From positions 186,001-250,000 of the forward strand of contig OZ176058.1 of assembly GCA_964247055.1 (NCBI GenBank): a stretch of 64,000 bases of DNA, given 5' to 3'. Position numbers and translations under genes: made by a program. Below the pieces are notes generated by a model, which had not been told where the DNA came from, ran no database searches, and saw nothing but the letters and a program-made list of their open reading frames with translations. How positions within the stretch are numbered: the stretch's first letter is position 1; every line of letters starts with the position of its first letter. Below, in pieces: positions 3,301 to 56,600 of this stretch. Source of the DNA: Paragordius varius. Lineage: Eukaryota > Animalia > Nematomorpha.

Positions 3301-6300
3301 ATAATTAAATTAATATTTTTAATTATATTTTTGATATTTTTTGATAATATAAATATTTTTGATTTTTTTATTTAATAAATTTTTTTTTAAATATTTTAGA
3401 ATTTTTTTGATTTTTATTAAATAAAATAATTAAATTCTTAAAAATAAGTTTTTTAAATAAAAAATGAATTATTTAAATAAAATTAATAAATTTTAAACGA
3501 ATTTTATATAAGTTAAGTAAAACTTTTGAAAACAAAATTAAAATAAAATTTATATTATAGAAAAAAAAAATAAAAATGTTAAAAAAATATTTTAATTAAG
3601 TTTTTAAAAAAAATATATAATTAAAATCATAAAAAATAATAAAAATTTTGATTTATTTTTTTTAAAAAAATAAATATAAAATATTTTTTGAAACCACAAA
3701 ATATTTATAATTATTGAAATAATATATTACTTTTTTTATCTTGAATAAAAATAATTTTCAAATTTTAAATTTTAAAATATTTTAAAATTGTCTAAATAAA
3801 TTATTATTTTAATTTTCTATTTAAATAATTATTCTAAAAATATTTTAATAATTTATTTTAGAAAGATCAGTCTTTAGTACTTACACAAAAACTGGTGATT
3901 AACCACGACACAGATGGCGCAATTTTTACCGGTTCTAATAAAGGTGCTTAACAAATATAATTTAACATTTTTTAATATTTTTTTATATACCTTTTTATTT
4001 AATATTTTGTATATTTTTTTAGATTTTTAAATTATTTATTTTTTTAATTTATAAATTATTTATTTTAATTTTTCAAATTTTTTATATTTTATATTATTAA
4101 TTTTACTAATGTAATTTTTGTTTTTACATTTTTCTAAATAATAATTAAATTATAAATATTTTTAATGGTATAAATAAAATTTAAAAATCTAATTTAAAAT
4201 TTTTAAAATATTAAAAAAAAATTATATTTTAATAAATAAATTAAATAATAATAAATCTTATTTTTAAATAAAATTTAATTATCTTTTATTTAAATAATTT
4301 AATTTATATCCTTTTAAAAAATATCAGGTGGTATAGTATTGATTGCAGGGACAGGATCAGCTGCTCAGCTGTTTTATCCACCCGTGTCAATGAATGAATG
4401 CAAATCATGTGATAATGTCATCGATGCCATAAGGACAGAAAAACAGCTGTTAAGCATGTGTGATAAATTCCGTATTGGGGGTTGGGGTTATGCCCTTGGT
4501 GATGAAGGATCAGGTGAGTTTTATAAATTTTTAATAAATAAATTTTTTTTTTAAAAAAAAATATTTTCTAAAAAAATATTATTTTTATTTATTTGGAAAT
4601 AAAAATTTCAAAATAAATTATTAATTATTAAAATAATTAGTAATTGAAAAAATAAATTTAAAATTAATTATTTATTACTTTTTAAATATTTATTTTCGAT
4701 TTTATCATTGATAAATATTTTTTTTTGATATTAAAATTTTTAAACAATTAATTTTAACTTTTTTAAAAATGGAAAAAATTATTATTTAAAAAATATTATT
4801 ATTATTTATTTGGAAAAAAATATTATTTTTAGAAATTTGGAAAATACTTATTTATTAAAAAATAATATAAATTAAAATGAATTGACTTTTACTTTAAATT
4901 CACCCTAAAATAAAATAAATTTTTTTTAAGATTAGAAATTATTTATATTTTTATATATTTTTAAAAAATAAAAATTTTGTTTTAATAAAAATATAATTAT
5001 AAACTATGCCATAAAAATATATTTCAGATTAATATTGAGTTATATTAGTTCAAAAACACATTTTATATTTTTAGGGTGAAATTCGAATTGTAAATGGAAA
5101 TTGATTTTCAAAAATAAAATAAAAATATTATTGAAATTATTTTTTAAAAAATAATTTATTAAAAAATAAATTTAAAATTAAATAATCATTTTTTTAACAT
5201 TTATTTCTTTTTAAAATTTTATTTTTTATTCGAAAATCATATATTTTTTTTAAGTGAAAAATACAGTTTTAAAATATATATGTTTTTTAATTTTAATACA
5301 TTTATATATTATTGATTTAATAATCGTTAAAATATAATAATAAATAGCTTTTTATTAATTTTTAATAATTTTTATTTTATTTTTTTTTAAAATTTAATTT
5401 TAAAATTTTTTTTTATTTTTTTCATAGCTTATCACATTGCCTGGTCTGCTATAAAATACGTTTATGATTCTGAAGATGGCCTCCTTTTAACTTCACCGCA
5501 ATCAGCTGATTTAGATACGTCATATGTTAAGGAGCGCATATATACTTATTTTAAGGTAAAATATTATAAAATTTTTATACAGCTGTTTTATTTAATTTTT
5601 AGGAAATAATACTTTGTTAAATTGTAATATTTCGAATTATCAGCTGTTTTTATTTAATTTTTTAGTTTTATATAATTAAATATATTTATTAGTTTTATAT
5701 AATTAAATATATTATGAAATTAATTGTTTTTACTTATTTGTGATTAACATTAATTATTTAAAATTATTAATTATTCCTTTTATTTTATATTTGCAGTTTA
5801 AAACAATGAGTTATATTTAGAAAAGTGAAATTTAAAACAATAGTATGGTTGGTTTGTCTTTAAGAAAAAAAATTTGTCTTTTTTTATTTGTCCGTATATT
5901 TTCAATTTTTACTGTAAAATTGTATGATCAGCTGTTTATAAACTCAGCTGTTTTTGAATGAATGAATGTTTAATTTAGATGAATCATATGGATGGCACAT
6001 TGGCATATTTTAAATTTTGGATGTTTTTAACAATAAATGTAGATGCTTTTATAAAAAAAATTAGTTTTCCAATATATTAAATTAAAATCACCTGATTTTT
6101 TGTTTTTTAAAAAAACAAATTAGTTAAGTTTTTAATTTTATAATTACATATGATTTGGATGAAATAAAAAACTTAATTCCAGATGTATATTTTTGGATTA
6201 AACTTTACAAATTTATATTTTACTGATTTTAAATTTTGCAACTCAGCTGTTTTATGAATGAATGAATGTTTATTTTAGATGAATTATATGGATGGCACAT

Positions 6301-53600: not shown

Positions 53601-56600
53601 CTGAGATTTCTATAAATTTAATTAAAAATAAAATTTAATTAAATATAAATATTTTTTGTAAAAAAATTTTTAAATTATATAGAAGTAATTTAATATCCAA
53701 AAATATTAGTTTTTATTCTTCAAAATCGGCAATGTTTTCCTGATCAGATTTATTTTGCTGAGATTTCTAAAAATAAAAAATTTAATTTAAATAAAAATAA
53801 ACAGCTGATTGAAGATAATATTTTATAAAAAATTCTTTTGATTTGATTTTAAGAATTTCTTCAAAATTTGCAATTCAGCTGTTTTATGCTGAGATTTCTA
53901 AAATAATAAAATTTAATTTAATTAATATTTTTTAAACAGATGATTGGAGAAAAAATTTAAAAAAAATTTTGATTATAAATTAAGTATTTTTAAGGTTTTC
54001 GTTTTATAATTTCTTCGAAATCCGCAATCTTTTCCTGATCAGCTGATTTATTTTGAGATTTCTAAAATAATAAAATTTAATTAATATTTTTTAAACAGAT
54101 GATTGGAGAAAATATTTTAAAATAATGACTTATAGTAATTTAATATCCAATATTCGTTTTTATAATTTCTTCAAAATCGGCAATTTTTTCCTGATCAGCT
54201 GATTTATTTTGAGATTTCTGGAAATATTCAATTTTACAAACAACTGATTGAAGAAAATATTTAAATAAAAATTTGGTTTTGATTTTAATTATATCTTCAA
54301 AAACCGCAATTCAGCTGATTTATTCTGAGATTTCTATAAAATACATAATTTAAAATAAAATATAAATATTAAATAATATTTATTAAACAGCTGATTAAAG
54401 AAAATATATTTTAAAAAAAACTTTTTGATTATATATTAATTATTTCTTAAAATCCGCAATCTTTTCCTGAGCAGCTGATTTATTCTCCTGAGATTTATGG
54501 AAAAATATATTTAAATAAAAATCTATTGGTAATTAAATATTTTACTAACAGCTGACTGAAAAAAAAATTGAATATATTTAGTAATTTTTATCCAATAATA
54601 ATTTTTGATAATTTCTTAATCTTTCCCTGATCAGCTGATTTATTCTGCTGAGATTTTTGGAAAAATATATAATTTAATTTAATAAAGAATTTAATTTTAA
54701 AACAGATGATTGAATAAAATATTTTTTTAGAAAAAAATTTTTTTGATTATATATTAAGTAATTTCCTAATCAGCTGTTTTCTGCTGAAATTTCTAGAAAA
54801 GAACACGTGATTAATGAATGTACATATAAAAAATTACTTACGATCAGCTGACTTTTTTAAATTATTACCTAATATATAATCTATGGCAAAAACATATTTT
54901 TTCACTAAATAAGATACCTTTTCAAAATAATCTTTAATATTATCAAAATTTTTGTTAACCAGTATTATTTTTTATTAATCACTTTCAATATCAGCTGTTT
55001 TTCCGCTTGATTAAAATTATGAAAAAGTTGTTTTTTGGATGCTAAACGATTTCTGTAAGCTCTATAAACTTTAAAATTTTATAACAATTTTTTTGAGACT
55101 TAAAATTCTTTAAAAACGATTAAAACCAACTATTTTCCAACTCTCAAAAACTTTATAAATTTCAATTTTTTTTAACCTTCAAGATCAGCTGATTTTCCAG
55201 TTCACAGGCGCGAATAACTATGGGACCTCGTACGGCATATTCCATTTGTTTTATACAGGGATTTATATTGCCCTCGTTCAAAATAAATTTCGTTTTCTTA
55301 ACATATGTTTTTTCTACAGCTGTTTTAATGCCTGCGTCAGCTGATTTCTCTGTGCCATTAACAGCTGATGATGAAGTTTTTGTACTGAATGGGGCGGCGC
55401 TTTTATTACCTGGATAAAATAAAAAATGTAAATTTTATATAAAATTAGAAAAATTAATTTTTTTTTTAAAAAATTTATAAAAATATATTTTTTACAAATA
55501 ATAATATATTATTTTAAAATATATAAAATTATTTAAAAGTAAATAATAATGAATATAGGTTATGTAAAATTAGTTTAAATTATTTTAAATAATATTTTAT
55601 AAATAAAAAAGTATAAAATATTTTATAATTAAAAACAATCATTTAAAATACTAACTTTTTAAAATTAAAATAAAAAAATTATTTTAAATATAAAAATAAT
55701 AAAATTTTAAAACAATAATAAAAAATTTAAATACTATAAAATTTTATACATATAAAAATAAAAAAAATTAATAAAAAATATTAAAAAAAATTAATATTAA
55801 TATTTAAAAAATAAAAAAATTAAATTATATATATATATATTATATATATATAAAAAAAATTAAATTTAACAAAAATTTGGGTCATGTGATTGCCCATTAG
55901 CCAATAAGATTGTGGAAGAGCTGCTTGCTGATAAATTCTGATTGGATAACATGGAAGTGGAATAAGACACGTGACGACAGGATGAAATTGACCAATCAAA
56001 TTGAGCACCAAATATTCTATTATAAAAAAATCAATTTAATTTTTTATGGCTTTATATATATATATATATATAAGTTTTAATAAAATTAAAAAATATAAAA
56101 ATAATAAAAATAAATAAATTAAAATTATATTAAAAGTTTATAAATTTATATATAAAAATCAAAAAATTAATTTTTTTATTATATAAAAAATTACTAATAA
56201 TTAAAAAATAATTTATGTATTTTTTATTACAAACTCGAATAATAAAATTGTAATTAATTTAATTTAATTATTTAATACTATTAATATTTTAAAATCTTAA
56301 AAAAAATATAAAATATTTAAAATTCATAATTAAAAACATTTTTTTTATAATTAAATTATATTTTTATTATAATATTAATAAATTATTTAAAAATTAAATT
56401 ATTAATAAAAATAAACAAAAAAAATTAAAAAATATATCTTTAATTTAAAAATTTAAAAAAATACCTTTTTTGCCTTAAAAGAGTTGAATAGAAATTATTT
56501 TTCGTGGAAGAAAAATTGCCAAAAACTTTCACCAAAGGACCTAAAAAATAAAAAAAAAATATAATTTAAAAATTTTTTTATAAATTTTAAATTAAAATAT

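Follow-up and report, generated by a model that had tools for sequence, protein, structure and literature searches.

Tandem copies of splice junctions in the introns of three genes of the nematomorph Paragordius varius, and their likeness to amphioxus mirages

Tandem repeats that span exon-intron boundaries are known from amphioxus, where they have been named mirages and occur in Adh3, troponin C, the globins BflGb6 and BflGb9, and PGBD5 (PMC3087553; PMC3902484). The globin mirages consist of units of 150-160 bp, present in 3-6 copies with 81-100% identity (PMC3087553; PMC3902484). Mirages are found at both 5′ and 3′ boundaries, and many of their units keep the AG or GT of the splice site; splicing was normal when followed by reverse-transcription PCR, and copy number differs between haplotypes (PMC3087553; PMC3902484). 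Their authors read them as arrays that turn over by unequal exchange with concerted evolution, while calling the mechanism of their origin unclear (PMC3087553; PMC3902484). Here, we describe arrays of the same kind in a 64,000-nt stretch of the genome of the nematomorph Paragordius varius (contig OZ176058.1 of assembly GCA_964247055.1, positions 186,001 to 250,000, forward strand; hereafter the window), in which three unrelated housekeeping genes carry copies of their own splice junctions in the adjoining introns.

The arrays in the window resemble mirages in that head-to-tail units of the same orientation lie across a boundary beside the authentic site, on donor and acceptor sides alike, and mostly keep AG or GT. 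At the level of sequence, they have every property of a mirage-type boundary minisatellite. They differ in scale and setting: while mirages were reported at individual loci, here about one third of all junctions in the three genes are affected, with up to 11 copies at a junction, 35% of all intron bases in these genes belong to arrays, the genome is about 15% G+C, and one array lies at a stop codon. For amphioxus, splicing was shown to be normal and copy number to be polymorphic, whereas the nematomorph arrays are known from DNA sequence alone. The first-pass annotation of the window knew of no earlier description of such structures; this does not hold for the kind, which is already published, but we found no report in the literature of arrays this dense, of introns built largely from arrays, or of a coding-edge bias detected without reference to annotation. 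What may be new is the density and the lineage.

Three further systems invite comparison. In the Rogers model of intron gain, for which there are cases in Drosophila, an exonic AG|GT proto-splice site is tandemly duplicated (PMC2891723). As here, a splice signal comes to be present twice through tandem duplication, and splicing removes whatever lies between the outermost sites; however, the duplication in that model lies inside coding sequence and makes a new intron, whereas the units in the window contain pre-existing intron, and would enlarge an existing intron while leaving the mRNA unaltered. Mutually exclusive tandem exons also arise by local tandem duplication within a gene, but they are complete, used exons with both splice sites, in contrast to the partial, often frameshifted and stop-containing copies seen here. 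Introner-like elements and introns derived from miniature inverted-repeat transposable elements (MITEs) likewise compose introns of repeated sequence in many genes, yet they are dispersed copies of one family, while each array in the window comes from its own junction.

Junction copies in three split genes

The range of the finding is three split genes: an N-acetylglucosamine-kinase-like (NAGK-like) gene on the plus strand, with exons from about 321 to 12382, and, on the minus strand, RAD23 (29514 to 15887) and the alanine aminotransferase gene ALT (55416 to 35688). Copies were sought with blastn, comparing each exon, and each junction with its flank, against 5 kb of surrounding sequence on each side; a junction copy had to be direct and to span the junction, with an exon part of at least 14 nt as well as an intron part. 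At 20-21 of the 60 junction sites in the three gene models, the adjacent intron holds at least one direct copy of the exon edge, the splice site and the intron flank. Acceptor sides (11) and donor sides (10) are affected about equally. The strong extra matches of exons are matches of exon edges only, always in direct orientation and in the intron adjoining that edge. Altogether 79 copies were aligned at 18 junctions, with 1-11 copies at each, and alignments that include the flank run unbroken across the junction through 14-95 nt of exon and 30-350 nt of intron, so that the duplicated units are not purely exonic. The GT or AG is kept in 71 of the 75 copies that align over the splice site, where the splice positions are neither more nor less conserved than their neighbours.

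The controls bear out this geometry. Under the same criteria, inverted copies in the adjacent intron were found at none of the 60 junctions, and the intron at the exon's opposite end contained a copy at one. Across all other introns of the gene, matches appeared at 9 of 60 junctions, counted by the criteria alone in a search space about tenfold larger. These results sustain most of what the first-pass annotation had said of the junctions: it had placed 1-11 copies at about 20 junctions, had described the copies as direct tandem duplications across the junction confined to the adjacent intron, and had called them intact decoy splice sites. Its total of roughly 68 junctions is close to the 60 of the present models, the difference depending on small exons that were perhaps missed. 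Its rule that live donors precede all their copies and live acceptors follow all of theirs also holds, although this is a logical necessity of such a duplication and not an independent finding.

Two explanations would remove the arrays from the biology of these genes altogether. The first is that an assembler expanded a short repeat; tandem repeats are error-prone in assemblies, and one amphioxus mirage was indeed misassembled (PMC3087553). However, divergence among the copies, and between copies and live edge, is 2-25%, each copy having private changes, and 85-96% of the 31-mers of the array-rich segment 48000-51000 are present in four DNA runs from two samples. In addition, a contig of 167 nt from a run under another organism's name matches part of an array (22817-22983) without a difference. 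An artefact is therefore very improbable, as had already been supposed on the strength of the divergence. The second is that a mobile element, introner-like or MITE, carried exon fragments into the introns. In its favour, CAGCTG sits in a 12-nt palindromic context, AAWCAGCTGWTT, and this motif recurs in many array units. Against it, an all-against-all comparison of units from 15 arrays returned only low-complexity or motif matches of 19-63 nt, and both the lack of inverted copies in the adjacent introns and the single copy on an exon's other side are at odds with insertion. Every array is built from its own local junction; no unit is common to the loci, and the arrays are therefore not one family of inserted elements. 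We give this origin almost no credence. In three runs that are possibly RNA and carry the same species label, only spurious matches of 18-35 nt to 18100-24000 were found. Runs X8-X12, listed as possibly RNA under that label, contain none of the exon words; the label may take in another organism, or the libraries may lack depth.

The largest array by copy number belongs to the NAGK-like gene, where 5927-8271 holds 11 acceptor-side copies of the intron end, the AG and the first 33-56 nt of the exon at 8272-8365, with Tandem Repeats Finder (TRF) periods of 175-195 and 334 nt; the live acceptor is the last copy. The same gene has a donor-side array at 9786-10316 (2 copies of the last ~28 nt of exon 9720-9785, the GT and the intron start; TRF period 154), and both were recovered by blastn. 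A third array, at 12376-13080, has no splice site; in each of its about 3 copies, the coding end is followed by the TAA and the beginning of the 3′ flank, with a period of about 191-200 nt.

In RAD23, blastn located at 16290-16335 one lone acceptor-side copy, taken from the start of the gene's final exon (15887-15983), 2-4 donor-side copies of the end of exon 19102-19263 at 18392-19101, and a donor-side array of 3-6 copies of the end of exon 20959-21119 at 19745-20958. On the other side of exon 20959-21119, 3-4 acceptor-side copies of its start occupy 21120-22169, into which a high-copy repeat is inserted at 21449-21842. Two large arrays of this gene are a donor-side one at 22171-23719, with 6 copies of the last 12-19 nt of exon 23720-23910, GTAAGT and the intron start, and an acceptor-side one at 25098-27354, with 7-8 copies of the CAG and the first 40-53 nt of exon 24900-25097, which fall into two breakpoint classes; both were found by blastn and neither contains any CAGCTG.

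The blastn matches in ALT comprise 5-6 acceptor-side copies of the start of exon 36706-36821 (36822-38140), 2 donor-side copies of the end (38376-39098) and one acceptor-side copy of the start (39256-39766) of exon 39099-39255, and 2 acceptor-side copies of the start of exon 41097-41216 (41217-41825). Exon 43132-43284 is flanked by a donor-side array of 4-5 copies of its end at 41907-43131, three of which stop exactly at the exon's CAGCTG (43189-43194), and by an acceptor-side array of 4-5 copies of its start at 43285-44748. The donor-side array at 44810-46025 contains 6 copies of the last ~33 nt of exon 46026-46109, GTAAAT and the intron start, two of which have a 3-nt deletion that turns GAA|GTAAAT into GAT|GTTAAT. 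Exon 47910-48057 has one donor-side copy of its end (47415-47909) and an acceptor-side array at 48058-49123, with 5 copies of the intron end, the AG and its first 61 nt in units of ~193 nt, every one of them bounded by CAGCTG, the youngest copies being 98% alike. Beyond these lie 6-7 donor-side copies of the last 60-78 nt of exon 50933-51084 (49208-50932) and 7 acceptor-side copies of the start of exon 53483-53609 (53610-54798), spaced by 136-164 nt, two of which have lost the AG. Several introns contain first the donor-side array of the upstream exon and then the acceptor-side array of the downstream exon, as at 43285-46025 and 48058-50932.

Window composition and gene identities frame these results. 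G+C content is about 15% for the window, 30-50% in exons and 3-10% in introns and spacers, and the introns of the three genes are 90-97% A+T. RAD23 is identified by single-exon matches to solved structures and by a UBA domain (Pfam), and ALT by single-exon matches to solved structures and Pfam. Two exons of the NAGK-like gene, searched against solved structures and Pfam, had no match, and its putative kinase identity is our own reading of the motif GGWG...GDEGSG. The repeat inserted at 21449-21842 is present in very high copy, with a summed contig depth of ~38,000 in run X5 against 1-250 in other bins of the same stretch, and is related to a 21-nt tandem unit (CCCTTGAACAATTCAAATTCA); related 21-nt repeats occur at 62418-62629, and translated motifs like those of the high-copy repeat at ~31057-31331, 34280-34532 and 60553-60805. 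Outside the three genes, long-period tandem arrays lie at 58860-59310 (period ~237) and 61221-61796 (~141), with no exon assigned to them.

Turnover, intron length and decay of the copies

Successive copies are spaced by a median of 193 nt, with 42 of 74 spacings between 140 and 220 nt. The arrays also contain higher-order units, such as the 334-nt period of the NAGK-like intron, and several hold multiple classes of exon-side breakpoint, from which it follows that the process is recurrent. Ordered decay with distance from the live copy is weak and not significant (mean tau -0.22). This combination of spacing, higher-order units, mixed breakpoints and weak decay is what minisatellites typically show when unequal exchange turns them over and new events recur at one junction.

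The arrays lengthen introns, roughly doubling those affected. Introns with arrays average 1933 nt and those without 843 nt (P=0.0004), and subtraction of the array sequence leaves a mean of 930 nt, close to that of the others, so that the arrays account for the excess length. Array introns are also richer in G+C, at 11-25% compared with 3-10% in the remaining introns. In these two respects, recurrence and intron growth, the mechanism proposed in the first-pass annotation stands; its reach across the genome, and the indifference of the spliceosome to the copies, are conjectures.

The copies themselves are non-coding relics that drift toward A/T. In-frame comparison of 62 copies shows frameshifting indels in 28, and 12 changes that introduce stops; differences with G/C in the live exon and A/T in the copy number 122, those of the reverse kind 70. 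Synonymous changes make up 0.44 of the differences between copy and live exon, or 0.38 when each change is counted once, where the reference shares are 0.23 if all change is neutral and, as a rough estimate, ~0.40 for a neutral copy set against a constrained live exon. Changes private to one copy are synonymous in 32% of cases and changes common to several copies in 68%, which is in keeping with copies that date from different times and a source exon that was itself evolving under constraint. At 25700-27110 in RAD23, the translated exon start is ...VTLEEYKI in the live exon and in the youngest copy but ...VTLSEYKI in older copies, a difference of five or six base changes within 9 nt.

It could instead be that selection keeps the arrays in long A/T introns, as U1 sites that counter premature polyadenylation, as decoys for splicing or retention, or as nucleosome-positioning units. 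The spacing of the copies is nucleosome-like, GT or AG persists in nearly all of them with splice positions decaying no faster than adjacent ones, the introns concerned have the higher G+C content given above, and exon-derived parts diverge less between copies (0.075-0.20) than intron-derived parts (0.22-0.43). This last contrast is, however, inflated, because copies were found via their exon part and A/T tracts mutate fast by slippage; we accordingly rejected it as a sign of selection on the exon-derived parts. The frameshifts, stops and A/T drift speak against coding constraint, acceptor-side arrays would not bind U1, and the copy number of amphioxus mirages varies between haplotypes, as in neutral minisatellites (PMC3087553). 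A selected function is therefore improbable.

Placement at coding edges and its explanations

The same arrays emerge when annotation is disregarded. A permissive self-BLAST of the sequence in chunks was uninformative, as A/T-rich introns match everywhere and in both orientations, and thresholds were then calibrated on inverted matches. At a blastn threshold of at least 100 bits, where inverted controls give 2 matches, 13 of 14 arrays lie at junctions, compared with 2.4 expected. TRF, run on the gene bodies with a period of at least 100, finds 11 arrays with periods of 103-334, of which 8 are at junctions, 2 are intron-only and 1 is exonic. The exonic array, a 132-nt unit repeated in frame at 11401-11639 (85% matches), is the only tandem repeat that lies entirely within coding sequence; it sits in a long in-frame stretch of the NAGK-like gene rich in S, E, K and N (11345-12230). 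When all exon-derived pieces are masked, the long-period arrays are still divided 8 to 2 between junctions and introns alone. The stop-codon array at 12376-13080 has no splice site, and it is therefore the edge of the coding segment that matters and not splicing as such.

As a null model, segments of the observed lengths were placed uniformly in the three genes. Under such placement, 75% fall in introns only, 15.7% across one junction, 6.7% enclose a whole exon and 2.5% lie within an exon. This predicts 0.43 whole-exon duplications per junction duplication, or about 8 for 20 junction arrays, and none is seen; no copy encloses a whole exon, the longest exon part being 95 nt of a 152-nt exon.

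We consider it probable that local tandem duplication, occurring repeatedly, and unequal exchange produced the arrays as minisatellite-like structures at the edges of coding segments, of the same kind as the amphioxus mirages. The duplicated segments, mostly 140-220 nt long and up to ~470 nt, would straddle the edge of a coding segment, and only those duplications that leave the mRNA unchanged would survive. With its single splice site and truncated exon, a copy would lack a partner site, and so would go unrecognised as an exon, while copies of whole exons or duplications within exons would alter the message and be removed by selection. In the weakest step of this proposal, the exon-derived piece would serve as the only anchor of normal complexity in introns of such extreme composition, defining and preserving a long unit where units of pure A/T would be scrambled fast by slippage. 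The live copy, being under selection, could not decay and could keep reseeding the array.

Several observations weigh against this account. The selection filter alone does not account for the placement of arrays at coding edges: uniform placement predicts ~4.8 intron-only duplications for each junction duplication, whereas TRF shows 8 junction arrays against 2 intron-only ones. The anchor and the undecaying master copy, which would fill this gap, are both things that we infer, and recognition by exon definition is assumed for this organism. The decay of the copies is not entirely as expected either. The most similar copies have 19 synonymous to 12 non-synonymous differences, above the model (P=0.013), and the RAD23 copy at 16290-16335 differs from the live sequence at 15936-15983 at five third-codon positions and nowhere else, with G/C in the copy at four of the five, which is hard to fit to long neutral decay. 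Gene conversion or exchange between haplotypes may contribute to such silent-only differences.

A mutational process aimed at coding edges is the serious rival to the anchor. Breaks or fork stalls at the border between G+C-richer exon and A/T-rich intron, or at CAGCTG or CACGTG palindromes, might be repaired out of register and would then yield duplications with one end inside the exon. The strong edge excess, which survives annotation-blind detection and the masking of exon-derived pieces, is what such a process would produce, and so are the several independent breakpoints per junction and the array at the NAGK-like stop codon. Palindromes are conspicuous as well. In 3200-58080, there are 172 occurrences of CAGCTG where shuffled sequence predicts 0.54; it lies in exons and exon-near introns but is absent from the most A/T-rich introns and spacers. 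CACGTG, the next commonest G/C-rich hexamer, occurs 14 times. Some units are bounded exactly by CAGCTG (at 47997, 43194 and 19151) or by CACGTG (at 51007). As a rule for where copies stop, however, the palindromes fail: 7 of 36 breakpoints coincide with them, compared with 3.9 expected (P=0.08), so that the statement is true of some arrays only, and the RAD23 arrays at 22171-23719 and 25098-27354 are without any CAGCTG. Extra conservation of CAGCTG within arrays was likewise considered and dropped, as its agreement with the consensus (0.88) is too little above that of other G/C columns (0.83).

We hold such a directed process to be possible but unlikely. The same modest likelihood applies to its fullest form, in which coding edges would be true hotspots for duplications of ~150-200 nt, through break or fork-stall repair at the G+C to A/T transition or at CAGCTG-type palindromes, introns would grow genome-wide from their own ends, and splicing would have become adapted to pass over full-strength decoys in the hundreds of thousands. 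Repeated local duplication with unequal exchange and a filter for unchanged mRNA remains the account that we prefer, with the edge excess as the observation that presses hardest upon it.

Implications for splice-site choice and intron length

The bias of long-period arrays to coding edges bears on the origin of mirages, which the amphioxus literature has termed unclear. If the density seen in the window holds genome-wide, P. varius would offer a natural experiment in splice-site choice, with dozens of near-identical, full-strength donor and acceptor copies within a few hundred bases of each real site and genes that must nevertheless be read correctly. It would also mean that intron length can be driven in large part by boundary minisatellites, of which a few amphioxus loci have so far given the known examples.

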